DNA from: Utricularia gibba
Lineage: Eukaryota; Plantae; Magnoliophyta
Assembly: GCA_002189035.1 (NCBI GenBank)
Contig: NEEC01000002.1
Location: 3,658,001-3,722,000, forward strand
Reading direction: 5' to 3'
Length of the DNA: 64,000 nt
In this document: in pieces, positions 2,790 to 40,994 of the stretch
Layout of the letters: each line of letters opens with the position of its first letter
Numbering within the stretch: position 1 is the stretch's first letter
Program-made: the position numbers and the translations under genes
Notes under the pieces: model-generated
The model's database searches: none
Seen by the model: the letters and a program-made list of their open reading frames with translations, nothing else
Told to the model about the DNA's origin: nothing

Positions 2790-5000
2790 GATTGTTAATT
2801 GAAAATTACACCAACTGAAGCTCTTTCATTGTTTGAGCATTCCAAGCATATTATCAGAAAGCAAGCCTCAAACAAGAAAGTGTATGAAGTGGAGAGTAAG
2901 CCTAAGGTTTCAGAGATTGAACTCACGAAGAATGTTGTTACTATGTCAGAAATGATGAAGGAGCTATTCTTATTCCAGGCTAAGAACATTCTATGCGAAA
3001 CTGTCACAGAACAGGGCATGTTTGGATAAGTGTCTAGATTTATTTGAAGAAGAGCATGCCAAAATCATGGATATTTGGACCCTAGCAGAGAAATAAATAT
3101 GATTCATATTGAAATACTTACAATCCAAGCTAGAGGGATTATCCAAATTTTCGTTGAAGTAACAATGAAAATTTTTGCAAAGGGAAAAGCTCAACAATGG
3201 GGTAGTAAAATTTTCAAGAGCAAAAATCTCATCATGCACCTCCATTTCAAAGGCAAAATCAACAGAACTAGCAGCCATTTCAAGCCTCAAATCAAGGCAA
3301 TGCTGGAGGGAATTTCGGAAATTCGTTGGAAGAAATTGTTAGTGTATGTGTTCTAAAGACAATCAACTCATTGCCAAATCTTATCCTTTGATATTTACTT
3401 TGAATTGTTATCAAATTTATATCATTGATAAAATCCTTTACTTGATCTATGTGCTATAGAAATTATGATGAGATCATAATGTGAGATTCTTCAAGTACTC
3501 ATGATCAAGTTAAACACTCCCTGGCTAGAGTGTTTGTGAAATAAGGATATCACAAATACGGAGAGGCTGGCACACATTGAGTTCCCTAAACTGTTTAGCA
3601 ATGGTTCTCACAATTGATGTAATGAGATTACTAGAGCCTATCTGTGGGTGTCGATTAGAGAATCGATTCACTGGATGACTCATCTTCGAGATGCTACTAT
3701 GGGAAGCTAACCAAGTGTCAGTAGCAAGATCTCAAATATGACAGCCATGCAAGTAAGCTTAGACTTGAGATCAACAAAATTATCTTGATCTTAAACTCAC
3801 ATTTTCGCTCATGCAACTAATGGGAGCCTAACCATGGCTTACCTAGTATGGATGAGTAGGGATGTGACTCCTTAAGGTTGGAGATAGTTGATTGATCAAT
3901 AAAGGATTCATCACTCATGTTAGCGATGAGATCATATCTCAAGTAATTGCATCAAAGCCTAACAATAAGTCCTGGGCCTAGGGTAATGACACTCGAATTG
4001 TTTGAGTAGGTCATTGAGTGTTAGTGCTTGAATGCAATTATAAGTTCGATACATCAGAAAGACACACACCCATGTTCTGATACCGAATGAGATATAAGTA
4101 TGATGAAAGTTGTTCATTGCATGGTAGCTGGTCATGGAAGTGCTCAATCAGTTCACCTGATTATTCTTTAATCTTGGGGATCATGATATGTTGCTAGACA
4201 TCACTCATGATCGATAATGATGGATTTGATTAATTAAGAGTTAATTAATAAATCCATTATTACAACCTTGATTGAAGAAGCCTATAGGGTCACACACAAT
4301 ACTGGAGTCACTCATCGATATAAAATAGAATGACACAATTACATGAGATGCAAATTGGTAAAGTGGATAAATTAAATAGAGAGCTATTTTGAGATTAATA
4401 TTGATTAAACTCAAAATACAAGATCTCATATAGATATGATTTGATATGTCACAAAATATCTATCGAAAAAGATGAGATCTTGAGATCTGCTCCAAAGGTC
4501 TTGGTGCTCTTTAAGATTGATCCACAAGGAGGCGTTTTTCTCTACTAGCACCTGAGAAATTCGACCAGCATTCAAGAGCCTTGAGAAGGTAGTCACGGAG
4601 TGCTCCACATGTGGATACCATAGAGTCCGTCTGCTATTGGCGGTTGGTGAACAACGGAGCCATCTGAAAGGTATTTTGAACATCCCTTTGCCTGATGTAT
4701 ACCGTATTCTAAGATCTGCATTTGGGGTTTCTCAAAAATTTTAAATTCCGCTGCTTTTGAGACATACGATGTCTACGAGAAACCCAACAGAAATGTTGAA
4801 TACATTCATGGCGCAATCAATCAAAAATCAAGCTGAAAATCAATAAGCAATCCGGAATTTGGAGGTCCAAGTGAGTTAGTTGGCAGCAGAGTATGGAGAT
4901 GTAAAATAGAAAGGGAGCTTACCATCTCAACCCAAGTCAAACCCAAATTCCAGTGGAGGACCGAACATTAGTGACATGACACTTATGATTGGAGAAGAGA
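2790..5000 (+). pseudogene. Athila gag remnant, interrupted by a solo LTR
   Basis: Frameshifted zinc knuckle (C..CHRTGH), NTYNPS*RDYPNFR (YNPGWRNHPNFSW motif) and AIRNLEVQV after the insertion. Confidence 0.75.
3337..4789 (+). mobile_element. Copia (Angela-like) solo LTR, copy A
   Basis: TGTTAG...CCAACA, perfect 5-bp TSD GAAAT; reverse complement of 20324-21825. Confidence 0.95.
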
Positions 5001-5862: not shown

Positions 5863-6390
5863 TAATGGGGTCTAAATCGGGCCTGGCTAATCGGTTACTG
5901 AAAAAGTAGCCAAAAGATGTTCTAACACACCGGCACATGCCGATAGACCGATAACTATCAGGGTTTGTTAGAAGCGGCTGTTTTGGACAGATTGAAAAGT
6001 AGCAAATTACGGTAATAGCAGAGCAGTTGGCAGTTATCCAGGGGCAGAATCACAGCACGTACAATAAGCACAGAAAGCAGCCGACTACTACGGAATTCAT
6101 GATTCGGTCAGATCGACCTCTTCTATAAATAGGAGAAATTCTGAAAAGAAAAGGGTTGGACTCCAAGCCCTCCAACTTGTATTTCCTCCCCACCGCTGTC
6201 TAGTGAAGTCATTTTCCGGTGAGCTCTGACAAGCTGCATGGTTTTTCCATTCTTCGACGGTTTCCACGTAAAAAACCTTTGTCCTTCTATATTTTCGCTA
6301 AACGCACTAACTACTCGGTTTCGACGCATATGGTGAACTCCATAACCGAAAAATTGGTTCCGAATCCAGTGCCGATTTTCACCCTTAACA
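5863..6390 (+). repeat. Tat 5' LTR
   Basis: Starts taatggggt (tgatggggt in the solo copy at 53031), ends cccttaaca; TATA ctataaata near 6123. Confidence 0.9.
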
Positions 6391-6410
6391 TTTTGGTGCC
6401 CATCTTGGGG
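6391..6410 (+). promoter_or_regulatory. Primer binding site (degenerate, tRNA-Lys/Arg-like)
   Basis: ttttggtgcccatcttgggg directly after the LTR, resembling TGGCGCCCAACGTGGGG. Confidence 0.6.
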
Positions 6411-6447
6411 GGGGGGGGGGGTCGTTCATCGCGGAAGTGTCGAATGC

Positions 6448-7700
6448 ATGCCATCCATCCATCATCTCACGCGGACGGACGATGCGCCAGGCCCTTCTCA
6501 CAAGCAAAGTGCAGTACAACAACACATCCGTGGGGCAAGATCTATTGTCCCACTCGAGAAATCCACAGAAGCCGCTCACCAAACATCCATCATGGTGGAA
6601 AATAGCATGGCCACCAACTCCGGCAATGAAGGAAGTGCCGGCATACAAGACCCCGGCCTCATGGTCATTAGTAGGGAACAACTGAAAGCCCTTGTGACGA
6701 AAATCTTCTCTGACTTTAAAGCATCTTCGGGTTGAACTCCAATGCACAGGAGGGTACACTTGAAACCACACAACGAGCAGAAAACCAACCCCTCATTCCG
6801 GAATACTCCCCGGACACGGAGACTGAATCCGAAACCGTGGAGGAGATGTTGCGAAGGAAGAGGTGCAACCAAGTCATCTATGAGCCAGGAACCGATAGGG
6901 GAAACATGACTGGAGAGATCTTTGAAAAAAGGTAGGAAGAGCTGAAAGGAGAACTAGACCAGATTTGTGAGAGAAGAAGACTTATTGGCAGACAAACACT
7001 GCCCAAGAGGAGAGAGAGTAGAGGCTTTAGGGATGCCTTTGCTCAGAACGTATGCACTGGAAGAGGGACGTTCTGGCCGATATTGACTTGGCTCTGAAGA
7101 GCAGCATTGAAGGAGCGGCCGGTACCCCAGCACTGCTCTTCGACCCCTTCTAGGATGAATTAATTGGGGAAGAACCAGAGAGGGGATTCAGGGTCCCCGA
7201 CAAACTACCCACATATGATGAAAAAAGGGACCCCATATCCCATGTAAGCTGTTCACTTGCTCGCTCCAAAAGGGAGCAAAGACTTGGTTCAAGCAGTTAG
7301 AACCGTGTAGTGTAGGATCTTATTGAGAGTTTGTGTTGCTCTTCACTACCCCATACGCTATCAACATCGAAGCTCTACCTTCAAAGGCAACACTTTATTT
7401 TATTCGGTATGACCACCAAAAAGAGAGCTTGAGAAAGATCATGAAATACATCCGAGTCGATGACGACCTCAGAGCCGAAATGAAAAGCCACCTAGAAATT
7501 CGGTCGGGGTTGCAGCAAGAAGTGCAGCACAACAGGGTCCCCGACTGAATAAACGCCGTGAAGTGTATCAGGTGGGACCAACCAAAATGGGCTCCTATTA
7601 TGAGATACACAAGACAATAGGGCACGATATTGTCAACTATCGAGTGATGAAAAGGATGATTGAGCAATATCATGCTGACACTGGGAGGAATGGTGCGACC
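6448..7700 (+). pseudogene. Tat gag remnant
   Basis: Fragmented frames including GFRVPDKLPTYDEKRDPISHV. Confidence 0.7.
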
Positions 7701-8547
7701 TGAGACCTCACACAAAGGACAGAGCGAAAGAGGAGATCAGATTCTATTAAAGAGATGTTCTCATCGGGCCAATCGCATGAAATGAACCTTAGCAGGGATA
7801 TGCGGAAGCACCAAGGTTAGGAGAATTCTCGTCAATCAGGGATCTTCCTACAACATCATGAAGAAAGAAGCTGTCGAGTTACTCACATCGTCTAAGGAGG
7901 GGGATATCCGTCCAATCCGCATGGAATTATACGCATTCGATCAATGGGCTGTGCAGACGGTCGGAAAAATAACCCTTCTCGTAACCTTTGGTGTTGCAGG
8001 CCGAAACTGGACAAAAAGACTGGAATTCTTGATATTGAACTCGCAGGTCTCATATAACATCATTCTTGGCCGACCCGGCATCAACCAATTCGGTATGTTA
8101 CCATCAATCGTGCACCTGAGAGTTAAGTTTCCAACACCAACGGGCATCTATACGCTGGATATCGACAAACCAGCCGCCCGATCCTTTTATGTGTCTTCCT
8201 ACCGAGATCCCTACGCGAAGAAATCAAGAATAATGATGGTGGAAAAGGAACCTCCCAGGCAAGCAATGGAACCAGTGGGGTACAAGTCATTGCAGTTAGT
8301 ACCAAAAGATACACAAAAGACGACCCGCATTGGCACCAACTTGAACGTCGAATTTGAGGAAAGGTTAGTGGGACTTCTAAGAAAGAATGCAGATATTTTT
8401 GTTTGGTCTACTGCTGACTTTGTGGATATCAACCGATCTATTGCTGAACATCATATTGATACCTATCCGGGAGCAAAGCCGATTCGGCAAAAACAATGGC
8501 ATTTTTTTGAAGAAAAGTGCCGGATCATCAAAGAAAAAACGAGAGAG

Positions 8548-9674
8548 TGTTGGGTTTCTTGTAGACATTGTATGTCTCAAAAGCAGCGGAATTTTAAAAT
8601 TTTTGAGAAACCCCAATCGCAGATCTTGGAATACGGTATACGTCAGATTCAGGGATGTTCAAAATACCTTTCAGATGACTCGGTTGTTCACCAACCGCCA
8701 ACAGCAGACGGCCTCTATGTATCCACACGTGGAGCACTCCGTCGATAACCTTCTCAAGGTTCTTGAATGCTGGTCGAATTTCTCAGGTGCTAGTAGAGAA
8801 AAAAGGCTCCTTGTGGATCAATCTCAGAGAGCACGAAGACCTTGGAGCAGATCTCAAGATCTAAATCTTTTTGATAGAAATTTTGTGACATATCAAATCA
8901 TATATATATGAGATCTTTTATTTTGAGTTTAATCAATATTAATCTCAAATTAACTCTCTATTTAATTTATCCACTTTACCAATTACATTTCATGTAATTG
9001 TGTCATTCTATTTTATATCGATGAGTGACTCCATTATTGTGTGTGACCCTATAGGCTTCCTCAATCAAGGCCGTAATAATGGATTTATTAATTAACTCTT
9101 AATTAATCAAATCCATTATTATCGATCATGAGTGATGTCTAGCAACATATCATGATCCCCAAGATTAAAGAATAATCATGTGAACTGATTGAGCCTTTCC
9201 ATGAGCAGCCACCATGTAATGAACAGCTTTCATCATACTTATATGTCATTCGATACCAGAACATGGGTGTGTGTCTTTATGATGTATCGAACTTATAATT
9301 GCATTCAAGCACTAACACTCAATGACCTACTCAAACAATTCGAGTGTCATTCTAGGCCTAGGACTTATTGTTAGGCTTTGATGCAATTACTTGAGATATG
9401 ATCTCATTGCTAACATGAGTGATGAATCCTTTATTGATCAATCAACTATCTCCAACCTTAAGGAGTCACATCCCTACTCATCCATACTAGGCAAACCATG
9501 GTTAGGCTTCCATTAGTAATGAGCGAAAATATGAGCTTAAGATCAAGATAATTTTGTTGACCTCAAGTCTAAGCTTACTTGCACAGCTATCATATTCGAG
9601 ATCTTGGTACTAACACTTGGTTAGCTTCCCATAGTAGCATCTCGAAGATGAGTCATCCAGTGAATCGATTCTCT
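8548..9674 (-). mobile_element. Copia (Angela-like) LTR copy B, truncated
   Basis: Collinear with 20324-~21505; lacks the last ~320 bp and the second TSD copy; splits RT between ...KTRE and LLEVGY. Confidence 0.93.
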
Positions 9675-10805
9675 TGGAGGTTGGCTATGTGAAGGAGATC
9701 CAGTACTCCGAATGGGGAGCCAATGCGGTCGTTGTCCTTAAGCCCGGGGGAAAATGTTGAATGTGTGTCGACTTCACCGACCTCAACGGCTGCTACGAGA
9801 GGGATCTTTACCCCTTGCCGAAGATTGATAAACTGGTGGATGCCATCGCCGGATCCTGATTCCTGAGCACCATGGATGCCTATTTTGGATATCATCAAAT
9901 CTTTGTCGCCGAGAAGGACCAACCAAAAACCAAATTCTACACCAAGGATGGAGTTTACTGCTATGTTGCGATGCCCTTTGGCTTGAAGAATGCTGGGCAA
10001 CTTATCAGAGGCTGGTGAACAAAATCTTTTCTTCTGAAATCGGTACTTCTATGAAGAAGATTATTTGACGTATTTGGATTCCTGTTTCTCTCTATGTCGA
10101 TCATAGAGATTAAAACTCAATCCGTTGAAATGCTGCTTCAGGGTGCAGAGTGGGAAGTTCCTCGGGTACTACGTATCGAAAAGAGGGATCGAGGCCGATC
10201 CAGCAAAGATCAAAGCAATATGCGAAATGCAACCTCCAAGGACAATCAAAGAGTATCAAAGCCTTACGGGTAAATTGACTGCCCTCAGTCGGTTCATATC
10301 CCGATCTGCTGATAGATCGGCATCTTTCTTCAAGGCTCTCTGGAAGGGAAACACTATGGAATAGAACGAGGATTGTCAGGTTGCTTTCGAAAAACTTATG
10401 GAATATCTATCATCACCGCCACTGTTGATGTCTCGAAAGAAGGAGAACCCTTGGGCTTTATCTATCAATATCACCCGTTGCGGTCAGCATAGTCTTGACA
10501 ACCATCTTAGGAGAAAAGCACCTGCTGGTGTATTATGTGAGCAAGGTTTTCCTACCGTCCATAACCCGATACACAGTGATAGAGAAATTCATCTTGGCTT
10601 TGAAAATGGCGGCCACCAAAATGAGATCCTATTTCTAGGATCGGCACATCATGGTATTCACCAATCAGCCTTTGAAGAATATCCTATCTCGACTTGAAAT
10701 TTCCAGAAGGGTCGCCAAGTGGGCGGTCGAATTAAGCACAATGGATATTGAATTCAAATCGAGAACGTCGATCAAAGCCCAACCTTTGCCGACTTTGTAG
10801 TCAAG

Positions 10806-11141
10806 ATGACCATGCCTATCGACCGGTTCGTGGAAATCAATGACCGATGGGCCATGTATGTCGATGGTTCTACATACAATGGGGCTGGAGGAGGAATTGA
10901 CATCCGAACTCAGGATGGAGATCATATTTACATCACGGTGAAATTCTTATTCCCCGCCACCAATAATGTCACCGAATATGAAGCTCTGATTGAAGGAATG
11001 AAAATAGCCAAGGAACTTGGAGTCGCAGAGCTCGATATTTATACCGATTCACGGCTAGTGCAAAGACAATTTTCGGGTGAGGGAGTTGGCAAAAACTTTC
11101 AAGGAGTTTACCCTATCGCATGTGGCACGCGAAGAAAATGA
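10806..11141 (+). pseudogene. Additional (archaeal-like) RNase H domain
   Basis: WAMYVDGS...GAG...ATNNVTEYEALIEG...IYTDSRLV; this extra domain is diagnostic of the Tat lineage. Confidence 0.9.
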
Positions 11142-12559
11142 ATCTGCCGATAGCCTCGCCCGATTTGCCATAGGTTTTCTAGGGTTAAAAGAGGGGAGTG
11201 TGACGATCCGATTGCGGGATCAACCTTTGGTGACCTTGCGAACAGTGAACTAAATCACACAGCAACTCGGAAGTGACATCTCTTCACAGCTAAGTCCCCT
11301 CAAAGATAGGATGTCACCTTATATCCAGTATCTGCAAAACAGAGAAACACCATCTGACAAATCGAAAGCCTGAAAGTTGGAGATTAGGGTAAGAGATATA
11401 CACTAGTAAAAGGAATTCTCTGTCAAAGATCCTTCCATGGACCCCTACTGAGGTGTATCGGGAAAGAACATTCTCAAGACCTTATTACCAATTTCCATGA
11501 AGAAGAGTGCGGCAGTCATGATGGGATACGATCACTATGCAAAAAGGCAATGAGAAGAGGGTACTATTGGCCAACTATGAAATAAGACATTACTGAAGTG
11601 GTGAGGAAATGCAAGATATGCCAATATCATGCAAATGTAATAAGAAAACTAGTAAAAAACTTGACCACTCTACCGCTCTCGTGCCTGTTTGATCGCTGGG
11701 GGCTGGATATCATGGGACCTTTCCCTTAGACCTCTAGCCAAAGGAAGTTTGTCATCGTGGGGATTGAATATTTCTACAAATGGGTAGAAGCAGAAGCCGT
11801 GGCAAAAATTTCAGAAGAAACAGTTATTCAATTTCTGTGGAGGAACGTCTTCATCCGATTCGGGATACCCCGAGAGCTAGTAACCGATAATTGAACCCAG
11901 TTTGCTGGAGGAAAGATGGATGCTTTTCTAGATAGGTATTCAGTTAAACACAACTTCACTTCAGTTTATCATCCTCAGAGCAATGGCCTCATGAACAAAA
12001 CTACAGGATTTTGGAGGGTCATGGGCAGACTGGTTGGATGAGGTGCTATGGTCATATCGCACCATCCCTCGAACCACTATGGATGAATCCCTCTTCTTAT
12101 TGGTTTACGGATCGAAAGCAGTATGCCTAATCGAATTAATGCTGAAGAGCTACAGGGTGGAACACTATAACGAAGAGGAAAATGCCGATCTACGAAAACT
12201 TGAGTTGGAGTTGTTTGAGGAAAAAAGACAGAGTATTTCATAGCCGACTAGGGGCTTACTAGAGAAGAACTGAAAAGAATTATAACAAGTCGGTATTCCC
12301 AAGGGAATTCTCGGAAGGAGACTTGGTACTCTAAAGCATTCGACCATAGAGGCGTGTAGGAAAATTAGACCGCAACTGGGAAGGCCCTTATTAGATTTCA
12401 AGGGTAATCAGAAAAGTAGCTTATTGTCTAGAACAGCTAGATGGCGTGGAATTTCGAAGGTCACGGAATGCATCGCATCTAAGGAAATTCTAAGTCTATC
12501 GCGAATCTCCACAGGTTTTGGTATTTTCTTCATCAAAACACTCAAGCGACTATATATTC

Positions 12560-13280
12560 CTCCAAAGTGGAGATGAGTTAAAAAAAATCAAAAGCTCTGG
12601 TAGTGTCATGTAAGCCCAGGCAAACCTCCTAAGCCTGCGGCCCCTGATGGGCATAGCAAACCAACTCGGGGCTCTCCCAGAGTTATGTGATCCTCCAAAC
12701 CCAGGCCCCAGTGACATGGGTAAGCCTTGGTATAACTCGGGCACCGGTTCCCCTAAACCGTTCGCGTAAGGTTCAAAAAAGCCCTTAAGTACAAACCTTA
12801 CTGCTGAATCTCGAGACGACAAGAGCACCCAAAGAAAATCTGCCCATGTTAAAACAATGGGATTTCGGCCAGAATAGGGCCCATTCGGATTGGGGAAGTT
12901 GTTCAACCCATGAGGGGTTCTGATCTACTTCCCTAGCAACGGTTTAGCTTGCGTAAGAAAAGACTAAGGCAAATAAAGATCAAAAAACCCAGCCAAATGG
13001 TTGGCAAGGGACACACAACCTTTGAATCATGTGAGTCCACACAAACCCTCCAAATCTAAGTCCCGCAATCGGCATAGCAAAATATCCCGAGGCTCCCTCC
13101 GAAGTATTGAATCCCCCAAACCTGGGCACTGATGGTGATGATAAACCCTGGTACAACTCGGGCACCGGCTTCCATAAGCCGCTCGTATAAGCCCCGAAAA
13201 AACCCTAAGTAAGAATTTTGCTACCGAATTTCAAGACAGTAAATGCACTCGAAGTAGATCCAACTATGCCCCGAAAGCAT
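12560..13280 (-). other. Two diverged ~290-bp repeats encoding a similar ~95-aa antisense peptide
   Basis: Copy 1 GFFEPYANGLGEPVPELYQGL...FGG...FAMPIRG.R..FAW; copy 2 GFFGAYTSGLWKPVPELYQGL...FGG...FAMPIAG.R..FVW. Confidence 0.7.
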
Positions 13281-14640
13281 AGATAAACTAAAGGAAGGAA
13301 TCCCAAACTAGGATCTCAAAATATAAAAAAACTCCAAATCGGGGACAAAAAAAAAACATCAGTCTCAAAAGAAAGGAATTAAAGTTCAGGGAGGGGATCA
13401 GTTGAGGGGCCGACATGTCCTTCCATCCTTGCCCTCAGCTTGGCTTCATTCTCTAGCCCAATCCTAGCCCGAATAAGCACTATTAGGCGCTCCTGATCCG
13501 CTTCAAACCTGAATTTCGGGGCTTGATACACGTCCGCGATGGCATCCAGCATGTTCTCGTCCTTCCTAAGGGATCGAACTAATTGAAGCGCGGGTGCGTG
13601 ATCGACAACCCGAATTCTCGGCTGATTTGGCGCCTTTGTTGATATAGAAGCCTGCCGATTAGATCCCCGGCGTAAATATCTGATAACTCAGAGAAGCAGG
13701 CCGAGTTGACAAAATCTTCCAAAAGCCTCCCCCGAGATGCCTCTTGATCAAGCAACTCAGCTTCCAAGGCCGAGACGCGATAATTGGCTTGCCTCAGCTC
13801 AGCCTCCGCCTCCTTGAACCAAACTTGAAACTCTCCCTCTCGGAATTGACATCATTGTTAAGTGTCATTTTCTAGTTAATTATTAGGTATTATTATGTGT
13901 TAATTATGTATGAAGTCGCCCAGATTAGGAGTCTTATTATTAAGTATTTTATTTTTACTAGAAAATTCCTATTTTCCCATTTTGTGTATATTATATGTCT
14001 TTTTTCTCACAGTTTGACCGAGACATGTCAGGAGACTGTCATAGAGTGTTACAGGAGTATTGCAGATGGTCAGACTCTGAGTTTTCGTGCCTTGTACGCG
14101 AGTTGGAACGATTGTGGGCGGAAGACTGACACTAGTCAAGGCCCCTGACTTATGGCATGTCAGAGTCTCCAGCAATGATTGGGCGCAAACTTGCACGCAA
14201 AGAAAGTCTGGTGGCGCACGCAAGACAGAAGGGCGCATCATTGTTGCAGTCTTTCTTAGACTAACGACTCTTAGTTAAGGTCCATGAGTAGCAGGCCACT
14301 TCTCGCGAATTTTGGTGAAGATCAAGGTGAAGAGCACCAATTCCAACCCTGCTGGTTCGAGGGAAGTAGTAGATTGTTTGTGGCCTAGGTACCGCGAGAG
14401 TGTATAGGTTGTGACCTCAGACCTGCCACTGGCCATTGGCAACAGCTGGGCAATCGAAGGCAATCCTCTTGCCTCCTAATCGTCTAAGGGGGAATCACTT
14501 GAGGCTATTCCCGTGCCTCCTTTTCAATTAGAGTGTAAGGGAGAGTAGGCTATTCCTTGCTCCTATAACCAGCTATTCGGAAGAAATCAGTGAAAAATGA
14601 GGCAAAGACGGACAAAGGAAGGAGATGGAATCTTATTCCC

Positions 14641-15160
14641 AAATAGGCGAGATTAGAGCTCAAGGCTCAATGATGCGCTATGGGCGTACCGTACAGCTTA
14701 CAAGAATCCTATAGGAATGTCTCTATAGCGAATGATCTATGGTAAGGCATGTCATCTTCCTTTTGAATTACATCACAGGGCATACTGGGCCGTCAAGTCA
14801 TGCAACCTGACTAGCGATCAAGCTGGGGAGAGTAGACTTTTAGACCTAAATGAGCTGGAGGAAATTCGCCTCAATGCCTACACTAACCAGCTCTTGCACA
14901 AGGAAAAGGTAAAATGCTACCATGATGATAAGTTTTATGGGAAGCAATTTTTAGTAGGTCAAAAAGTTCTCCTATTTGATACCACCTTGAAGCTCTTTCC
15001 CGGTAAATTGCGTTCTAAGTGGCTTGGACCTTATGAAGTTGTGAATGTTTTTCCTTCTGGTGCTGTTATTATTCGTTCATTTGAGACATGGAAAAGCATT
15101 AAGGTCAATGGACATCGATTGAGCCATTTTATGAGAAATTTAAGCGCACAGTGTGTGTAG
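14641..15160 (+). pseudogene. Integrase C-terminal remnant of the inner Athila
   Basis: LNDALWAYRTAYKNPIGM, YGKACHLPFELHHRAYWAVK, KLFPGKLRSKWLGPY. Confidence 0.92.
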
Positions 15161-15485
15161 CTTACTGCTAGTCGAGGGCCATTAACAGGTGTCACAGTCA
15201 GCCAAAGATTGTAAATTGGCGCTGAATGGGAGGCAACCCATGACTTTAATTTCGTAACCGTTACTCTTTCCTCGTTCTTATCACCCACTACTCCAAGTTA
15301 CTTTATTTTCACCTGCCCCATGCCACCACTTACTCCTTTAACTGCTTCTACACTCAATCTCTCTTTTATCTTTTGGCATTCCCATTTTTACTGACCGTTA
15401 CCCCACTTCGCTGTTGTGACTTGCATTTCGATTCTTCTCATTCTCTCGCCTGAAATTCCCCGATTCTCCGAATTTTCTGCTCACC

Positions 15486-17148
15486 ATGCCTGGACGCCCC
15501 ACATCTCCGGTTAACCGAAGCGCAAGTGCTGCAAAGGCAGCAACTCGGAAGCGCCAACCTGCTGCTGCTAGACCATCCAGAAGGACCCAGCGTCGCCGCA
15601 CCAACAACCCAGCAGAAGCCCCTGCTCCCACTGAGCATGAGCCATCTTTAGGCGCTGCGGTGGAGTCTGTTCCGATTGAGGCAACACCTCTGACTATAGT
15701 GTTGCCGGTGTTGTACCTAGAGTGGTACCCAGTCCCTGCTGCTGCTACTGTTGCTGCTGACGAGCCGGAACCCTCAGAGCCAAATTCCCCAGCAGCAATT
15801 TCTGTTCCCGAGAGCCTGCATCCCACAGAATCGAAAGAAATCACTGGAGGAAAGGGTAAGGAACCAGAAATTCCTAATATTCACTCATCCCCTTCTCCAG
15901 TACAGGACGAAGATGACATTGAGGAGATCACCATCGACGAAGCGGTTGATCTCTGGATCTCTGAAATGGAGTGTGCCGCTAATGAAGGGCATGCCTTGAG
16001 TTTCTCCCTGGAGAACAGGATGTTGATGAAGCAAGTCAGCCCACACAGCGTGGTAAAGGACAGCACTGTCACACAAAATTCTGGCGAGACCGAGCACTGG
16101 AGTCCCCTGCTTGGACTCAGCTGAAAAACATTGTGAAATTTTCAGATAAGAATGCTCAACTCCTATTTAATCTCTTGACCTCGCGCAGAATATTATTTGA
16201 CTTCAAATTGAATACGCCTACTTTGGTGCATCTGAATCTACTTGATGATATCAACCGTTTATTTGATGCTTCCTCTGAGTGGTGTAGATTTTCTGAAATT
16301 AGTCTTCCAGTTTATCCCAAACTTGTTTTCGAATTTGATACAACTATTGTGATTGAGGATGTGGCTGGAGATCCCCTTGCTGAAAATTTGATTTCTTTCC
16401 GCCTTGGAGGCAACAACTTTCTCATGTCTACAAACGATTTTAATGTGGCTTTAGGCTTTGTTTCTGAATCTGATTTAACCACTACACGTTACCTCCAAGC
16501 ATTCTGTGATTATCCAAGCATTCTTCCATGTCTGTCTGTTAGCCCCCATTTTCTGTACGCAAACTCAAGGCCCATTACATGAGAGCCCCTACTCTTTTAG
16601 TTTTGAACAGGTACTTGGGAGGCTGTTACAGCGCAACCCGACAAGGCACCAGCATCATTGCCAAGGTGATTGTGTTCTTCTTGTGGGCGATGATGAAGAA
16701 ACTTCCAATCAACCTGGGATGGTGGATTGCAACTCAAATGGACTCCATCACCGCCAAGAATGAGAGGGTTCTCCCCTTTGCTTCTCTCATCACCAAGCTC
16801 GCCCAACACTTGAAAATGAACCTGTAAAAACAGACCCCTCAGGTAGACAATCATTTCCGTTATCTAGATTTTGGATGATTTGTTTTCTTGCAGCTACTTG
16901 AAGGAAGTTGAGGGAAGGCTGTTTTTGTTCAAGCGGGTACCAAGAGTACCATCACCTCCATGCCCTCCTCAATTGTGAATCCATATGGTGCGCCAACAGA
17001 CATTCCTCTGAGCACTGCACCATCAAGCCCCACCAAACACACCCTGCTTCTCGCTATTCAGAGTCTCCAGGAACAGGTTTCTGCACTTTCAACGAAACTA
17101 GACACTCTGATAGCTACTGCTTCACACTCCGACATGCCCCATGACTAA
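15486..17148 (+). pseudogene. Athila env-like extra ORF remnant
   Basis: Pro/Ala/Glu-rich N-terminus then VYPKLVFEF...ISFRLGG...FNVALGF...INLGWWIA...LPFASLITKL; position between INT and PPT. Confidence 0.75.
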
Positions 17149-17435
17149 GGTATCCTCCCTCCGCTGCACTTGATGATGAGGACATCCTCAAAATTAAGTG
17201 TGGGGGAGGAGTTTATGTTTCTTTTTTTTTTATTTTCTAGTATTTTCTGGGTATTAGGACATATGTGTTAAACTTAGTGGAATTTTTTCTGTTTTCGTGC
17301 TTAATGTTTTGTTTTTCTTTTGTTTTTTTTTTGTGAAAAATCTCCACTATACTCCTCAAGTACATTTGCTTCCATGAATAAGGCTAGAATTTTTAGGATT
17401 GATCATGCTTAGGTTCATGAATTCCTGGCTACTAG

Positions 17436-17479
17436 AATAATAATAATAATAATAATAAGAATAATAATAATAATAATAA

Positions 17480-17530
<51 letters not shown>

Positions 17531-17547
17531 TAATAATAATAATAATA
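17436..17547. repeat. (AAT)n microsatellite
   Basis: ~37 units with a few AGA/ACA interruptions. Confidence 0.98.
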
Positions 17548-17963
17548 CAAGGGGTGCCAAAGGTAAGGATGTTTGGCAAAACCATGGTTAACACCACACA
17601 TCAGGTTTCGTAATCCAAAAATTCTTCCCCAAAGCGGGGACCTCTATAAAAAAAAAAACAAAATGGGCGGGGGGGGGGGGGGGGGGAAGAAAAAGGTCTT
17701 GAGTCACTATAGTGTATGTTATTTGCTATTTTTGACTTGATGATGTAGTGTATAAGTAGTCATTAGTTAAATCTTTACCTGATGCATGCGAACTTGAGTG
17801 GCTTGCCTTAATTTGATTGAAGGATAGGAAAAGAATTGGAGTAAACGCCTACTGTAGGAACAATGTACCTTCGTAATGCATCATGACTTAGGTTCTGCCC
17901 TTTTTCATGGACTGCTATAATTTTCATACTTGAGGACAAACATGATTTAAGTGTGGGGGAATA

Positions 17964-18911
17964 TGTTAAGTGTCATTTTCTAGTTAATTATTAGGTATTA
18001 TTATGTGTTAATTATGTATGAAGTCGTACAAATTAGGAGTCTTATTATTAAGTATTTGATTTTTACTAGAAAATTCCTATTTTCCCATTTTGTGTATATT
18101 TTATGTCTTTTTTCTCACACTTTGACTGAGACATGTCAGGAGACTGTCAGAGAGTGTTGCAGCAGGTGGTCAGACTCTGAGTTTTCGTGCCTTGTACGCG
18201 AGTTGGAATGATTGTGGGCAGAAGACTGACACTGGTCAAGGCCCCTGACTTACGGCATGTCAGAGTCTCCAGCAATGATTGGGCGCAAACTTGCATGCAA
18301 AGAAAGTCTGGTGGTGCACGCAAGACAGAAGGAATGATGGGAAGGGGACCCAAAGGAGTTAATGCACGTGGGAAGTCATATAAAAACCACTTGGAGCAGA
18401 TTGTTTGTGGCCTAGGTACCGCGACAGTGGACAAGTTGTGACCTTGGACCTGCCACTGGCCATTGGCAACAGCTGGGCACACGCACACAATTCGGTTTTG
18501 AAGGCAATTGAAGGCAATCCTCTTGTCTTCCTAATCGTCTAAGGGGGAATCACATGAGGCTATTCCCGTGCCTCCTTGTCAATCAGAGTGTAAGGGAGAG
18601 TAGGCTATTCCTTGCTCCTATAACCAACTATTCGGAAGAAATCAGTGAAAACCGAGGCAAAGACGGACAAAGGAAGAAGATGAAATCTTATTCCCAGGAA
18701 CTGCGTACCGTAGTCAAGGCCCATCATTTATGTTGTAACTTTTCTTTCTGCATCTTAAAAACCCCCTTTTACAAAACCGTGACATTTTGTAGAAGTTTCT
18801 TACAAAACACTTTTCACGAAAAACAACTCCCTGTGATCGATACTCGTACTCTGCTTTCTGGTGTTTTACGTTTTAAATATTTAAAATTTGTTGAGAAAAC
18901 GACACGCATCA
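17964..18911 (+). repeat. 3' LTR of the inner Athila (family Z)
   Basis: TGTTAAG...GCATCA; matches 13856 onward and the reverse complement of 36223-37483. Confidence 0.93.
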
Positions 18912-20323
18912 ATCATCGATCGCTTTTCCCATTTCATCAACCACATTATGAAGCTCCTCCTCCCGACGAGAAGGCTTCCTGATAGTCGTCCTCAAAGTAC
19001 TCCCTTCCTTCTCCAATAGTTTCACTTTGGCTTCTTGAGCTACTATGTGGGTTAGAAGCCGGATAACCTCTTCCGAGTAGGATCCCATCTTCTGAGCCAT
19101 CTCCCATCCGAAGGTCAGAGCCTGGAAAAAATTACCAAGTAAGAAACCGGTTATACACAATTCTGAGAAGAAACAAGACGAATACCTACCAAATCTCTTT
19201 AAGCATGACTTCCGGCTGAACGTCCGGAAGACTCGGTATGGATTCCTCCAACATTCTCCTTAATTCGGCCGGAACCGAAGGAGGGGGAAGTGCCGGATCG
19301 CCTCTTACCTCAATTGGAGAAGAATCCCTCTGCACCTCATTCGGGGGGGGGGGGGTGGGCGATGTGGAAGCACCAGCCAAAAAGGGGCCCGTTCAGAGAA
19401 TCGGGGCCTCGAAAGGTTTAGGAGAAGGGAAGAGTTTCTCCTTTCCATTCCCAGGTGGAGGAGGATGGGTCGATTCCCAAGTCTAAGAAACTTCAATTAC
19501 TTGATCCCCTTCTGAATAATGGTCGGTAGAATCCGAGTGAACTTCTGGGGAATCAGCCTAAAAGAGGAATTGAAAAAGATCATAATCATGAATCCTTTAC
19601 GACGGCTTATATAAACCAAACCTGAATGGAAGGGACAGCATCAGATTCTTGCATCCTCTGCATTTTGACAGAGAAGTGGGCCATCACTGAATCCTCCAAG
19701 GCAGACCAACATGCCATTTCCTCAGCTGCACACGAAAATGAAGAAAGTGGTGAAACACAATAAAGGTATTGCAATTCATGGAGGCAAAACTCGACTACCT
19801 CTGTGCTTCCTAGAAGGTTTCTGCGCGCAAACCTTAGCCCTTTTTCTTTTCTTTGGAGTTGAGGGCCGAACAGAGGGCTCAGGAGCTGAATCGGAGGGGA
19901 GAGAAGTTGTCGGATTGGAAGTGGGGGGTGCAGCCGAATTAGAGGAAGCATTATGTGGAGATTGTAAGAGAAGCCAATACTCCAAGTCAGAACCCAGAGG
20001 AATGAGGAAATCGGGCCACTGTCCATCTTGACCACGACCGAGGATCCCCCATGTCGATAAGGAGTCTCGAAAAAGCGTCAAGGTTTGAGACTCGTACCTA
20101 ACTGAACACTCACCCAGCCTACGATAAACTTCCCTACTGGATTCGTTAGAAGGACGGAATCGGCCAAATGGCTTAAACTTCAAAGGAGAAGAGGCCTTTA
20201 CTGAAAAATTCCATCTCGCCCCCAACGGGGGAGCAACCCAGATAAAGGAAGACCACCAATTGTGGTGGGTATTGGGGGCCTTGAGGATGAAATCACGGTG
20301 ATCCTCAAATCGGCAGAATTGAA

Positions 20324-21825
20324 TGTTGGGTTTCTCGTAGACATCGTATGTCTCAAAAGCAGCGGAATTTTAAAATTTTTGAGAAACCCCCAACGCAGAT
20401 CTTGGAATACGGTATACATCAGACATAGGGATGTTCGAAGTACCTTTCAGATGACTCTGTTGTTCACCAACCGCCAATAGCAGACGGCCTCTATGGTATC
20501 CACACGTGGAGCACTCCGTCGATAACCTTCTCAAGGCTCTTGAATGCTGGTCGAATTTCTCAGGTCCTAGTAGAGAAAAATGCCTCCTTGTCGATTAGTC
20601 TTTGAGAGCACGAAGACCTTTGGAGCAGATCTCAAGATCTAAATCTTTTTGATAGATATATGGTAACATATCAAATCATATCTCCGTAAAGATCTTATCT
20701 TGTGGAGATATGTATATGTTCCAAATCTTATCTATATATGATCTTTTATTTTGAGTTTAATCTATAGAAATCTCAAATTAACTCTCTATTTAATTTATCC
20801 AGTTTAGCAGTTACATTTCATGTAATTGTGTCATTCTATTTTATATCGTTGAGTGACTCCACTATTGTGTGTGACCCTATAGGCTTCTTCAATCAAGGCC
20901 GTAATAATGGATTTATTAATTAACTCTTAATTAATCAAATCCATCATTATCGATCATGAGTGATGTCTAGCAGCATATCATGATCTCCAAGATGTAAGAA
21001 TAATCAGGTGAACTGATTGAGCCTTTCCATGACCAGCCACCATACAGTGAATAGCTTTCATCATACTTATATCTCATTCGATACTAGAACATGGGTGTGT
21101 GTCTTTCTGATGTATCGAACTTATAATTGCATTCAAGCACTAACACTCAATGACCTACTCAAACAATTCGAGTGTCATTACCCTGGGCCCAGGACTTACT
21201 ATTAGGCTTTGATGCAATTACTTGAGATATGATCTCATCGCTAACATGAGTGATGAATCCTTTATTGATCAATCAACTATCTCCAACCTTAAAGAGTCAC
21301 ATCCCTACTCATCCATACTAGGCAAGCCATGGTTAGGCTCCCATTAGTAATGAGCGAAAATGTGAGCTTAAGATCAAGATAACTTTGTTGACCTCAAGTC
21401 TAAGCTTACTTGCACGGCTGTCATATTCGAGATCTTGCTACTGACACTTGGTTAGCTTCCCATAGTAGCATCTCGAAGATGAGTCATCTAGTGAATCGAT
21501 TCTCTAATCGACACCCACACATAGGTTCTAGTAATCTCATTACATCAATTGTGAGAACCATTGCCTAAACAGTTTAGGGTACTCAATGTGTGCCAGCTTA
21601 TTCGTATTTGTGATATCCTCATTTCACAAATACTCTAGTCAGGGAGATTTAACTTGATCATGAGTGCTTGAAGAATCTCACATTATGATCTCATCATAAT
21701 TTCTATAGCACATAGATCAAGTAGAGGATTTTATCAATGATATAAATTTGATCACAATTCAAAGTAAATATCAAAAGATAAGATTTGCCAATGAGTTGAT
21801 TGTCTCTAGAACACATACACCAACA
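20324..21825 (-). mobile_element. Copia (Angela-like) solo LTR, copy C
   Basis: TGTTGG...CCAACA, perfect TSD TTGAA. Confidence 0.96.
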
Positions 21826-22279
21826 TTGAAAATGTGAAAAATTGTGCATTGGGCGTTTAGCCTTTTGGTATGCGACCTTGAAAAGTTGGAAGAAGTCCAC
21901 TAGGGTCATACCTGGATCCATACCCACTGAATAAAAGAGGAATGTGATGAAGCAAAAGATCGAATTCGGAGAGAGAAAGTAGAGCGGAATAGAAAATATG
22001 TGAAGAAACTGGACTATAAGGGGATGAAGCAAGAATTGAAGTCCGCTGTCCAAATAAGCAAACAGAATAGGAAGATTAAAGCGGGGAAGGGGCGTCTCTC
22101 CCACACCCCATGGTATTTGACTATCCTGAGCTTGGCTAAGGATGTATTCATCGAGAATCGAATATTTGGCCCGAATGGCGGAGATATTCAACTCACTGGA
22201 TTTCCTAACCATCTTTCTTTCGGGAGATAGAGAGGAAAAAGATTCTGGAGGGGGTCACAGAAAGAGGGAGAGGGAAAAT

Positions 22280-22746
22280 TGTCAGACCGATAACTGTCAG
22301 GGTTTGTTAGAAGCGGCCATTTTGGACAGATTGAAAAGTAGCCAAATTTCGGCGATAGCAGAGCAGTCGGCGGTTATCCAAGGGCAGAGTCGCAGCGCAT
22401 ACAGCATGCATGGAAAGCAACTGGCTACTACAGAATTCATGATTCGGTCAGATCCACCTTTTCTATGAATCGGAGAAATTCTGAAGAGAAATGGGTTGGA
22501 CTCCAAGCCCTCCAACTTGTAATTCCTCCCCATCCCCATCTAGTGAAGTCATTTTCCGATGAGCTCGAACAAACTCCGTGGTTTTTCCATTCATCGACGG
22601 TTTCCACGTAAAAAACCTTTGTCCTTCTATATTTTCGCTAAACGCACCAAACAAAGCACAAAACCGCTACCCGGGTTCGATGCATCTGGTGAACTCCATA
22701 ACTTGAAAATCGGTTCCGACTTTAGTGTTGATTATCGCCCTTAACA
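22280..22746 (+). repeat. Tat 3' LTR (shorter at its 5' end than the 5' LTR)
   Basis: Follows purine tract agaaagagggagagggaaaa; aligns with 5945-6390. Confidence 0.88.
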
Positions 22747-23681: not shown

Positions 23682-25420
23682 ATGTTGGCAACACGAAGTG
23701 CAAAGAAGGCTGCAAAGGAGAAGCCTAAACGGAAAAAGATGCAAAAGGAGCAAGCAAAGGAAGGTACGGGGATGCTGAAGCAGCCACAACTATTGCTCCA
23801 ACACAGGAAGAAGTGGTTCAGCAAGTTGCTGCCAATGCAGAGGACCCCTGAGAAGTGGACGTGATTCCTCAAACAGCGGAGGTGGGGGAGCCCTCTACAC
23901 AGAAGAAATGGAAGGACCCAACCTACAAATTAGAACATACCAACCTCCAGCAACGATTGAAGGACATGCAGCAGAGTTACAAGAAAAGAAAGGCACCAGC
24001 TGAAGAACCACCCTCAGAGCTGTAGGTCTCATCTAAGAAGAAGGGAAAGAAACATGGAACGAAAAAGTAGAAGGCCCCGTTGGAAGAACCTATGACTGAG
24101 AAGGAATCTACTGTACCTGAAGAACAAATGCTGCCCATCATGGAGGAAAATGCTGGAATTTCTAGAAATGAATAAGAGGCAGCAGAGGAAGAGGCGGAGG
24201 CTGAAAATGAAATTCTGGAGGCGAAGAATCAGGAGGAGGCTGGAGGTAAGAAGGAAACTTGACATTCAGAGAAAATGGACGAACAGGCTATGCAGCCATT
24301 GGTCCAAGGCCAGAAAGAGCAAGGAACTCCACTTGCAGAAACCGCCACAAGCATAACAGAAGAAGAGGAGGAAGGGATGGAAAAGGTAAAGAAATTTCTT
24401 CCAAAATTAGTCCCTATGTTTATGAATGTTGGAAAGTTCACAGTGGAGAGGGAACTATTTCATCGACAAATGACTGGAAAGGGAATCCCTTATGTCAAGC
24501 ATCATGCAGACATATTGAACAACAAGTACCTGAAGTTTGTAACAGCAGAATATGTGGACCGGTATGGAGAGGTAAAAGGTGCTAAGGTATGGCCCTGCCG
24601 CCACATTGACTTTGAAATTCTTGTCGAGTTGAACATAGTGGACAAGGTTTATGAAATGTTTGAGAACACTGCATTTATGATCTTATTCAAATTAAAACTT
24701 CCTGCTTATGTGGAACTCACATATGAATTTGCCTCCACGTTTATATACCGAATTCTAGAAACTGGTTTAGAGCCAGCTGCTATTTCTATTCGTTTGATGG
24801 GGACTGAATTTTCATTTTCATTAGCTGAGTGGAATGTAGCTCTTGGTTTTTGCTCAAAACAGGAAGTCGGTTCGTATGGTTTCGCTGCTTCTTTATTTGA
24901 TTATCCATCAGACTTTGATGCTAAGGAATTTTATAGAATTTTGACTGATCAGCATGTCATTGAATTTAAGGTAAAGGGAACAAAATCTGAATTATTTGTC
25001 GATCCTTTCGTGCGCTATGTTCATATGTTAGTCACTACAACCACCTTTGGTAGGAATGTCGGATTTAATGCTATTTACAAAAGTGAATTATTTGTGTTGT
25101 GGTGTATAATGCAAAAATGAACTTTAAACTTAGGTGCCATGCTTGCTGAACAAATGAATAGGGATTGTAGGCATTCGAAAATTCAGCATTTAAGCTTTGG
25201 TCATATTGTCATGCATCTCGTTCACACTTTTTGCCCGGAAAAACTGTTTGAACTTGAATTCTTCCATGTTGAGACTAAGAGAGTTAATGTATATTCTTTG
25301 AAAGTTAATGGACTAATTAAAGCCCAAGAAAGTGGCTTTGTTTTTAGATCTTTAGCATGGTTGGAAGGAAGTGTTATTCCAAGGAAGAAGAAAGCAAACA
25401 CTACTGCTTCTTCAACTTAA
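23682..25420 (+). pseudogene. Outer Athila env-like extra ORF
   Basis: Glu/Lys-rich N-terminus; 281-aa open frame with PAYVELTYEFASTF...ISIRLMG...EWNVALGF, homologous to 16133-16827. Confidence 0.78.
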
Positions 25421-25705
25421 ATTGAAGGAGAAAATGCTTCTACTGCCCGGAAATCCTTGAAGTGATGAGCGAAAAAATTTCAAACCTGATTTGTGTAGTC
25501 ACAGAGTTGAAACAAGGAGTGGGCGATGTCTCGATGAACAAGTAACTTGCTGGTATGATGATTTAGTGTAGTTAGTTTTTATTTTTATTCTGTTTTATTT
25601 TCATGTTTAGGATCCTGTTTACGTCAAGAAAGAGTGGCATCTATTAGTTCAAGTCTAGACTTAGAGATGCGTTTACTATATGTTCTGTTTAGTAGCAATA
25701 AACCA

Positions 25706-26332
25706 TAAGTGCTTAGCCACTCATGATAAGGTAAAGGAAAATGTTTTCATAGCATATCCTAAACAACATCCTTGCTTTAAAACTAAACAACAACGAGCAA
25801 TATCCAATAGAAGTGGAAAAGACAATTTGTTCACCCAGGAAATCCAAATCTAGTCTTAGCTAGGACTAGTAAACGTCAAGAATGAAAATAAATTCTCAAG
25901 AGAAGATGTGTTCTTCTGGTTCGTCGTTCGCCTCCTTCTTCTTCCTCAAGAAAAATCTCTAGAAACTTGTCATGAGTCTCCAAAGGGAGATCTGCCTTCT
26001 CTCCCCACCTTTCCTAACTTTTTGTCCAAAATCTCCCTTTTTCACCTCCTTGGACTTTGTGTGTACTCTTTTTCAGACTTCTATCAACTTCTCTGCCACC
26101 ACACTGTTCATATTCGGCTCCTTGGGATTTGTGTTGCGACCTATGCTGCATTGCTCGAAGGGAACTGTTAGAAGGTTGGGACTAAATCTGTGATTTAGTC
26201 CCAACTAAGACTAAAAGTGCACTCCTACGGTACTTATGTGCAAAAATATAGAAACAGGCAATTAAGCTTAATTTTTGTAGCACAAAATGAGTAAATTCCA
26301 TGCATTGAGCCACTCAAAAATATCTGTTATCA
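25706..26332 (-). mobile_element. Family Y LTR fragment (5' part)
   Basis: Reverse complement of 49087-~49710. Confidence 0.85.
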
Positions 26333-26800
26333 ATGACATATCTAAAGAGCATGTGCGGACACAATAAATAGTGAAAGGGTGAGTAGGGATAGACTAATCC
26401 AGAGGAATATAAAGAAGCTTGGTGTTATAAGGTGTGAGTGCTTGCCCAACATTTTGATAAGAAAAGGCAATTACATTATGCCCGGATTACTCTGGAACAA
26501 GCTTCCACTTCACTACCCAAAAAAAGAAAAAAAGAGAAAAAAAAATGAGTTGGCAACTATGATCCTAAGTGACCTTGGATGTATCAACTCTATAAGACAT
26601 GATCTTCAAAAATACTTTTCAAGAGAAATCTACTCATGCACATTTGAGCGATGAAATGACATGCACACTTGCACTTCTATAGCTCATGCATCGGAAATTA
26701 CTATTAGTTGTTTATGTCCATCATTGACACTGAAGGAATCAGTTTTCTATTAGTCTTAGGTAGGACTTGGGGACAAGTGTAGTGTCATTGTAGTATAGTG

Positions 26801-28179
26801 TGATAGCACACAAATTTTCATGTTTTAGGATATAATAATTATAGCTTTTTAATTATGCTTTCATTGCTTTTATAGTTATAAGTATTTTTTATATAACTTA
26901 GGAAATATGTGGTTTTTGTGTGTTAGTGGGCTAAATCCTTTGATTTAGCCCACCCCATGTTCTAACCCAATCGTGAGTCCACCAGCAAGTCTCAAAATTA
27001 TGTAAAGACACAAAGATTTTGTGCAAATGACCATGTAGTAGGAGGAGTAGAAGACAATGAGTGCACTTCCATCACATTAGTCTGCAAGTCAGGAGCAAGA
27101 GCAACAATGGTGTCAAAAATTGTACTTTGAGAAGTGAGAGAGGAGAAAATTAGGAGGAGAGAGAATTGAAAAGGGAGCTAGAGCGAGCAGCAACATAGGG
27201 AGAGGGGGCTTCTCCCCAACACAACGAGCATGGAACTAGAGGGAGGAACAAAGGCGATTTTCTGGAGAAGAACCTTTACTCTAAAAAACAAACATCAAGA
27301 CCTAGTTCAGTGCTACTGTTCTAGCCTGTGAATAATAGCAAATGGAAATCAGAACTAATATTGCTTTACTTTCGTTTGTTGACGTTTTTAGTTTCTGCAA
27401 CCAACTCTCTCACAATGTCTTTGACATTTTCACCACTTTATCTTAATGTTATCATATTTTTCCTTCCATACATAAGTAGCTAAAATTGTAGATATGACTT
27501 AAGGTAAAGCATGGTGGTGTGGGTCTAGGGTTTATAACATATTTCATCATTGTTTCTTAGATCTTGTTTCTATCATTCCATGGGTAGATCTAAGGAGGGA
27601 ACAAGTAGCTTCGCAACTCAGATGCTTGATTTAGAGGTAGACCAACAAAGCAAGGTGGGGACAATAGGTGTTAGTCTAGAGTAGAACCAGTAGAACCAGG
27701 TAGACCTAGTTCTACACACTTTGCATGCGGGTAGACCTAATTGTGTTCGTGATGATATTGAGGACTATCTTAGCTGAAAATATGATGAATGACCTAGATA
27801 GACTTCGGTTGTTTAAAGTTGTGAATATAGGAACATAGTAAATTAAATTAGCCATCTTAGCACCACACCACCTGCAGACCCTTGAGGCATCTTAGTATTA
27901 CTCTGTATTAAAATCAATATTTGTTATTTTCAACGTTGAGACTTAATCTTGTTTATCGAACTTACCTACTACTGTTAGTTTGAGCTTAGATTAAGAATCA
28001 CTGTTATTCCAAAATCTACATCCACTGAAATGCTTAGCAAGCACAAGCTCCATGTGATCGACCTTGAATTCTACTCTACATTTTGTGTTTTATTTATACT
28101 TTGTCAGATTAGGATTATAATTTTATTTGATACGAAATTCTATTTTTATTGCAATGATAATAGGAATTTCTGTTTATTA
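26801..28179 (+). repeat. Family X LTR, probable 3' LTR of the outer Athila
   Basis: TGATAGC...TTTATTA; reverse complement of 38032-39422; no TSD, follows the Athila 3' UTR. Confidence 0.8.
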
Positions 28180-30104: not shown

Positions 30105-31020
30105 TGATGAAATGGGTAATGCATTGGGACTCCTAGGGGATGTATGCTCATCACTAAACAAGCTCATACAAACCATATATCAAACAACTAACTCACAAGG
30201 TCTAGGTCTACTCGGACTCTTGTTTTCCCCCTAATCTTTGGTCTACCTCTAATTAGGGTTGTTAAGTTGGGTTTCACTACTTCTCCCTCCTTAATCTATC
30301 CTGGTTTGTTAAGGAAGTAGCATGACCTATGGGTTGATTAAATCTAAGATTGATTAGCACATTTCTCCTCCTTTCACCCCAAAACACCCCCTAAGTGCTT
30401 AGCCACTCATAACAAGGGAAAGGAAAACGTTTTCATAGCATATCCTAAGCAACATTCTTGTTTCACAGTTAAACAACAACAAGCAGTGCATTACAGAAAT
30501 AGAAAGGAAAATTTTTTCATGCAGTAAATCTAAAATTAGTCTTAGCTAGGAACAGTATGCATCAAGAATACAAGTAAATCTTCAAAGAGAACTGGTTCTT
30601 TAGGGTCATCGTCCCTTCCATCTTCCACCCCAAAAAATTCTACAGAAAAAAATCTCGTGAGTCTCTAATGGGGGAGATCTCCCTCCTCTCTCCATTTTGT
30701 CCCCCTTTTTGTCTCAAAATATACCTTTTTCTCCTCCTTGGATTTTGTGTATACTTCTTTTCAGACTTCTGTCTCATCCTTTGCCACTACACTATTCATA
30801 TTCGGCTCCTAGGGATTTGTGCTATCGACATGTGCTGCATTGCTCGAGGAAACTATTAGAAGGTTGGGACTAAGTCGCAGATTTAGTCCCAACTAAGACT
30901 AAAATAACACAACTACGGTACTTATGTGCAAAAATATAGAACTAGGCAATAAAACATAATTTTTGTAGCACAATATGAGTAATTTCCATGTATTCAATCA
31001 CTCAAAAATATGTGTTATCA
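30105..31020 (-). mobile_element. Family Y LTR, truncated
   Basis: Reverse complement of 49087-~49995; ends tgttatca. Confidence 0.88.
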
Positions 31021-38020: not shown

Positions 38021-38031
38021 GATAAACATAA

Positions 38032-40990: not shown

Positions 40991-40994
40991 ACTT

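Follow-up and report, generated by a model that had tools for sequence, protein, structure and literature searches.

A duplicated minus-strand segment behind pol in a long-dead Tat-lineage retrotransposon of Utricularia gibba, possibly the relic of an antisense coding unit

A long-dead LTR retrotransposon of the Tat lineage in Utricularia gibba carries two diverged copies of one segment, in direct orientation and 421 bp apart from start to start, between the stop codon of pol and the stop codon of an ORF on the opposite strand. The duplication itself is clearly beyond chance. Both copies can be read on the minus strand as variants of the same peptide, and the differences between them show a marginal tendency to spare this peptide. 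The explanation that we favour, with a probability of roughly 0.55, is that the Tat-lineage element once possessed a duplicated antisense coding segment, of which these copies are what remains. All positions refer to the window, which is the entire stretch of 64 kb that was analysed. It consists of plant DNA with 36% GC and is dense with decayed transposons. The host element comprises the following parts:

5938-22746 (approximate limits), plus strand: host LTR retrotransposon, Ty3/gypsy, Tat lineage, decayed and with three interruptions
5938-6390, plus strand: 5' LTR of the host element, with the ends TG..CA and a putative primer-binding site behind it; pairs with 22280-22746
10806-11141, plus strand: archaeal-type RNase H (aRNH) of pol, matching Pfam RVT_3 (E 1.1e-7) and RNase_H (E 4.4e-7)
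11300-12493, plus strand: decayed integrase of pol, with a weak rve match and remnants at 11598-12243
13379-13860, minus strand: remnant of the C-terminal part of the main antisense ORF, resembling a coiled coil and read in two frames; its stop codon is at 13379-13381, and the nested element truncates it at 13856
13856-18696, plus strand: LTR element nested in the antisense region, which it splits, with LTRs at 13856-14641 and 17964-18696
22264-22278 and 22280-22746, plus strand: polypurine tract and 3' LTR of the host element

An aRNH domain located between the RT/gRNH and integrase domains is a hallmark of the angiosperm Tat lineages (PMC4408406), and the pol of the host element shows this order, with aRNH upstream of the integrase remnants. 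The Tat setting assumed in the original prediction is borne out by this RVT_3-type domain, by the pair of LTRs, and by the polypurine tract GAGGGAGAGGGAAAA upstream of the 3' LTR. The two LTRs (5938-6390 and 22280-22746) are 84% identical according to blastn and differ by 13% substitutions in a MAFFT alignment. A matching 5-bp target-site duplication was looked for at the ends of the element, and no clean one was found. The name "Tat-lineage" is used here without the label "Retand", because PF04195 was not detected in the antisense stretches of the element. In the plus frames, pol terminates with a stop codon at 12491-12493, after a GPY motif (near 12390) and the C-terminal residues NASHLRKF. 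The possibility that the repeats encode a C-terminal extension of pol was rejected, because pol ends after GPY and HLRKF and before the repeats begin.

The host element is broken by three inserts (8545-9674, 13856-18696, and 20321-21825). Reading of the RT breaks off after IIKEKTRE at the insert 8545-9674 and resumes exactly past it with LEVGYVKEIQY, so that hardly any of the RT is missing. An alternative pairing of 8545-9674 with 20321-21505 as the LTRs that frame the studied pol was discarded, because the RT reads directly across 8545-9674. A unit of 1.1-1.5 kb with TG..CA ends occurs three times in the window (8545-9674, 20321-21825, and 3337-4789, the latter on the minus strand), and its copies are 90-93% alike. 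These are probably solo LTRs of another family, two of which reside within the Tat-lineage element. The LTRs of the nested element (13856-14641 and 17964-18696) are also about 90-93% alike. The flanks of this element form no target-site duplication (ATCAT versus GGAAC), a sign of possible recombination or of an accompanying deletion. The element contains an ORF for an integrase C-terminus (14732-15160). A 149-aa ORF at 16133-16582 looks similar to a 281-aa ORF at 24275-25120 (plus strand), which matches Pfam ATHILA ORF-1 (PF03078, E 9e-7). A TAT/ATA-type microsatellite at 17356-17601 reads on the minus strand as a poly-tyrosine ORF. Many pairs of diverged repeats, in direct or inverted orientation and 70-87% alike, occupy the right half of the window (25703-31020, 35631-44166, and 49087-52625), where they indicate several further old nested elements of LTR type.

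The duplicated unit and its immediate surroundings are composed as follows:

12550-12924, minus strand: stop-free stretch that contains copy 1, 124 codons (12553-12924) followed by the stop codon at 12550-12552
12606-12850, minus strand: first copy of the unit (copy 1), with 52% GC and an open minus frame; aligned with copy 2 by blastn, by MAFFT, and locally
12851-13026, minus strand: spacer between the copies, 176 bp, 35% GC, unlike either outer flank
13027-13270, minus strand: second copy of the unit (copy 2), with 48% GC, a 1-nt deletion near 13207, a TGA, and a TAG
13271-13378, minus strand: T-rich and AT-rich spacer between the antisense ORF stop and copy 2, 33% GC, 53% T on the minus strand

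A blastn comparison of the window with itself aligned 12606-12840 to 13027-13260 with 67.7% identity over 235 bp (E 1e-16) and yielded no third copy of the unit anywhere in the 64 kb. The MAFFT alignment covers 243-244 bases, of which 81-82 are substituted, and contains one gap of 1 nt. The flanks (12400-12605, 12841-13026, and 13261-13460) align no better than shuffled sequences. Two repeats of about 290 bp downstream of the main antisense stop had been proposed; the repeat and its position stand, whereas the similarity extends over no more than about 235-250 bp. As the copies differ by approximately 33% and the LTRs of the host element by only 13%, the duplication predates this insertion and was carried by the active lineage. 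Judging from these two distances, some of the divergence between the copies arose during the active life of the lineage.

In the minus frame, both copies encode the pattern GFF..Y..GL..PVPELYQGL..P.FGG..S..A...FAMPI.G.R...F.W..M, so that the translations and motifs of the original prediction were reproduced. Copy 1 had been described as open for 118 codons, which is the length in amino acids of the listed ORF (12550-12906, TTG start); the stop-free run is in fact 124 codons long. For copy 2, the predicted 1-nt deletion near 13207 and the TGA opposite a CGA were both found, and a TAG opposite a TGG at the 5' edge of the homology had been overlooked. Each of the two stops is a single transition away from the sense codon in copy 1. 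Among the 81 aligned codons, 22 are identical, 42 differ with a change of residue, and 17, rather than the dozen or so counted earlier, differ synonymously. A plus frame that shares the same third positions (KPWYNSGTG) was rejected as a candidate: it is interrupted by two stops, located at the same alignment columns in both copies, as the original caveat about this frame had correctly stated. In copy 1, the conserved motifs have no ATG ahead of them, and an ORF defined by a start codon is thus not present there. In the present DNA the two units lie in different frames with stops between them. Canonical GT..AG pairs approximately 100-150 nt apart would be able to connect the frames. One such pair, from 13019 to 12920 (100 nt), would join the frame of copy 2 to the ORF of copy 1, and pairs from 13414 to 13264, 13288, or 13315 would join the main antisense frame to copy 2. 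Introns between these antisense frames would be a matter of inference from the DNA, as many frame-compatible GT..AG pairs fit.

All tests for coding constraint rest on two sequences from one dead copy of the element. Omega (NG86) is 0.30 in the chosen minus frame and 0.41, 0.64, 0.75, 1.26, and 1.43 in the other five frames. Since transitions between the copies outnumber transversions by 61 to 21, the null distribution was obtained by permutation according to base class: the differences were shuffled among sites with the same base and, in a further variant, also within CpG classes. Observed pN/pS in the chosen frame is 0.46, compared to null values of 0.75 +/- 0.15 without and 0.71 +/- 0.13 with CpG classes; the corresponding P values are 0.004 and 0.01, and P is 0.04 for the best of six frames. 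Codons that differ only synonymously number 17 versus 11.9 +/- 3.1 expected (P 0.075; best of six, 0.25). The BLOSUM62 total is 176 in the minus frame versus 135 +/- 23 after permutation (P 0.035), and a plus frame with stops reaches 167. Differences are distributed over codon positions 1, 2, and 3 as 27/81, 21/83, and 36/83, i.e. in the order expected for coding sequence (2<1<3). Thus, the frame singled out originally is the best of six by openness, by pN/pS, and by the highest BLOSUM total (176 versus 167 for a plus frame with stops).

A run of 124 stop-free codons in any of the six frames arose in 2.4% of the shuffles of 12500-12960, and stretches of at least 110 stop-free codons cover 23% of the transposon-dense window. 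Indels are scarce, with one event per 81 substitutions (0.012) compared to 0.034-0.079 in nine non-coding repeat pairs from the same window; about 3-4 events would be expected, and this deficit alone is not significant (Poisson P approximately 0.08-0.24). The cores of the copies are GC-rich (48-52%), like the neighbouring antisense ORF (47-57%), and are embedded in AT-rich or T-rich flanks that share no similarity. Such a sharply bounded GC-rich core amid dissimilar flanks weakly suggests exons bordered by introns or UTRs. When the tests of open frame, pN/pS, and indels are roughly combined by Fisher's method, as if they were independent, P is about 0.001-0.02. Individually, the possible coding signals are weak, yet all of them favour the same minus frame. 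The signature of purifying selection that had been proposed holds up in its direction, with the chosen frame having the lowest pN/pS, but not in its strength, as P for the best of six frames is 0.04 or 0.25. We regard the pattern as apparently real in direction and marginal in support, its significance depending on the measure that is used.

Searches for relatives were negative throughout. The unit peptide has none in Pfam and retrieved none from a word-indexed protein search; a profile of the two copies found no relative in PDB sequences, and none turned up among 1.84 billion representative proteins searched by profile or in viral, prokaryote-genome, and metagenome contigs. The ESM Atlas gave no usable match, and four 11-12-mers of the conserved core had zero occurrences in the supplementary sequences of PMC11963269. 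A calibration, which covers the word-indexed search only, showed that a 296-aa protease-RT fragment and a 169-aa antisense ORF of the host element also remained blank, and that none of six ORFs from the window was present in the collection. Thus, blanks for plant transposon proteins carry little weight in this search. AlphaFold2, run on the two-row alignment, produced a poor and uninformative model (mean pLDDT 41.3). The recognition score of a protein language model was 1362, which is under the level reached by 91% of known families. At the RNA level, folding z-scores of the two copies were not significant on the plus (-1.9 and +0.7) or minus strand (-1.0 and -0.7), and Rfam returned only sub-threshold noise for the copies.

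The main antisense ORF next to the repeats has a GC content of 47-57% over almost its whole length, which falls to about 30-33% right past its stop. In the Tat lineage, antisense ORFs encode PMD or TRP28 (PF04195) plus a C-terminal coiled coil (PMC4408406). PF04195 did not match the antisense stretches at 21706-22254, 19779-20369, 19610-20077, and 18912-19259 at E <= 10 or the remnants at 13382-13552 and 13582-13767 at E <= 0.1, and it did not match the two repeat copies; this absence is weakly informative, as the antisense region is decayed and split by nested insertions. Long stop-free antisense stretches also exist in the 3' part of the host element (21706-22254, 19779-20369, and 18912-19259, all on the minus strand). 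One of these has a basic patch of the PKKRKR type, and one shows a weak NET2A-like coiled-coil match. By eye, 21706-22254 resembles the TRP28 N-terminus, albeit without a PF04195 match even at E <= 10.

If the repeats are indeed coding relics, the following scenario may be envisaged. A short coding segment opposite to the gag-pol strand would have been duplicated in an ancestor of the host retrotransposon family. In the active ancestor, this segment would have lain immediately past the point where the antisense accessory gene ends with its coiled coil, and it might have been translated either as two extra 3' exons spliced to the antisense gene or as a small second antisense gene; a spliced extension and a separate small gene are equally possible. 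The product would have contained a unit of about 80 residues twice, rich in glycine, proline, and aromatic residues. While the family was active, the copies would have diverged under constraint at the protein level. After insertion at the present site, neutral decay would have followed, with copy 2 acquiring two stops and the frameshift and copy 1 staying open by luck. The sequence shows that the segment is duplicated, where it lies, what its frames look like, and in which direction the substitutions are biased, whereas translation, splicing, and any function of the unit are what we infer in this scenario. By analogy with the Tat antisense proteins, for which nuclear, nucleic-acid-binding, and regulatory roles have been proposed (PMC7264820, PMC11963269), the unit would serve the life cycle of the element in an accessory or regulatory capacity. 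The second accessory gene with a tandem domain that had been suggested for this locus is a fair hypothesis but is not established: the signature of selection is marginal, copy 1 has no ATG upstream of its conserved part, the units are out of frame with each other and have no relatives in the libraries searched, and the structural model has a pLDDT of 41. It is a tentative and rather doubtful extrapolation that active relatives of the element make an antisense protein with a tandem unit of about 80 residues (GFF..Y..GL..PVPELYQGL..FGG..FAMPI), spliced or separate, that has no relative in the libraries. Should it be true, this tandem-unit product would give plant retrotransposons an accessory module that has not been described.

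A duplicated coding segment is not the only conceivable origin of the repeats. The spacer between pol and the 3' LTR may simply have been duplicated as non-coding DNA, as in the repeat expansions near pol in Retand/Tat elements, and the open frame and the excess of third-position changes would then be due to chance. This is a serious possibility, to which we give somewhat less than even odds. The signal resembling selection has a P of only 0.04 to 0.25 once six frames are taken into account, long stop-free stretches are common in the window, and the unit has no ATG, relatives, or confident fold. However, openness, pN/pS, the 2<1<3 order, the BLOSUM total, and the small number of indels, which are partly independent of each other, favour one and the same minus frame. 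Moreover, a neutral tandem unit of 421 bp would be expected to be alike throughout, whereas the similarity observed here ends sharply at the GC-rich core, and the arrays described have units of 8-100 bp in at least three copies, whereas this region holds two copies and Tandem Repeats Finder was blank.

Two further explanations were considered, both with low probability. The retrotransposon lineage might have captured, and then duplicated, a piece of a host gene or some other mobile element, in which case a coding-like pattern would be inherited from the source and need not serve the retrotransposon. Plant LTR retrotransposons are known to transduce cellular sequences (PMC11963269), and the GC-rich, ORF-like core with its sharp borders would suit such a capture. 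We consider it improbable nonetheless. No similar protein or domain was found in the libraries searched, although their coverage of plants is doubtful, and the 64-kb window holds no further copy of the kind that a dispersed short element often leaves. In addition, the substitution bias lies between the two copies and must hence have arisen after the duplication, within the lineage of the element. Even less probable is a doubled cis-acting element that is conserved in its nucleotide sequence as such, for instance an RNA structure used in export or packaging, or a DNA site bound by a protein. In retroviruses, duplicated transport elements lie in the untranslated stretch downstream of pol. The position of the repeats in such an untranslated stretch and the sharp edges of the conserved core would be compatible with a role of this kind, but the copies show no signal of a stable fold (z-scores from -1.9 to +0.7), no Rfam family came near its threshold, and change with a three-base periodicity would not be expected. 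The duplicated antisense coding segment thus remains the explanation that we prefer.

Plant retroelements have few accessory genes, and the antisense genes of Tat/Retand elements belong to them. If the unit described here is a real coding module, the antisense side of these elements would encode more than the PMD/TRP28-plus-coiled-coil protein described so far, and duplication of exons or domains would be shown to act on this side. Antisense transcripts might then also be spliced, and the field has been asked to look for such splicing (PMC7264820). In practical terms the unit is a lead from one dead copy, providing a short set of motifs and coordinates with which the remainder of the genome can be searched.

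Antisense extra ORFs located between pol and the 3' LTR have been reported from maize Grande (gene23), rice RIRE2, and Silene Retand (PMC7264820, PMC11963269, PMC4408406), and 32 of 104 of them have no recognised domain (PMC11963269). The unit resembles these ORFs in that pol contains aRNH, in its location in the same region and on the same strand relative to gag-pol, and in having no relatives outside transposable elements. The known ORFs are at least 600 bp long, start with ATG, and encode PMD or TRP28 (PF04195) plus a C-terminal coiled coil, whereas the unit lies past the stop of the coiled-coil-like ORF, lacks an ATG, comprises about 80 codons twice, and stems from one dead copy. A second point of comparison is the tandem arrays of Retand type next to pol, for which units of 8-100 bp are reported that occur at least three and up to 85 times (PMC11963269). 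The repeats share with such arrays the place directly behind pol, the family-specific sequence, and the direct orientation, but they consist of two copies with a period of 421 bp, about 245 bp of which are alike, and a divergence of 33%. Tandem Repeats Finder reported zero rows for the unit region, in which at least three short head-to-tail copies as in a Retand array were thus not found. Finally, the intron between gag-PR and pol of Ogre (cited in PMC4408406) is an example of a spliced gene in a Tat-lineage element. Introns are used by this lineage, and in the element analysed here GC-rich blocks are separated by AT/U-rich spacers with frame-compatible GT..AG pairs; however, the Ogre intron is on the sense strand, whereas the antisense splice sites considered here are predictions from sequence. 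At worst, the two copies represent an ordinary old duplication. At best, they add to the established antisense extra ORFs an unrecognised, internally duplicated unit that follows the coiled-coil end.
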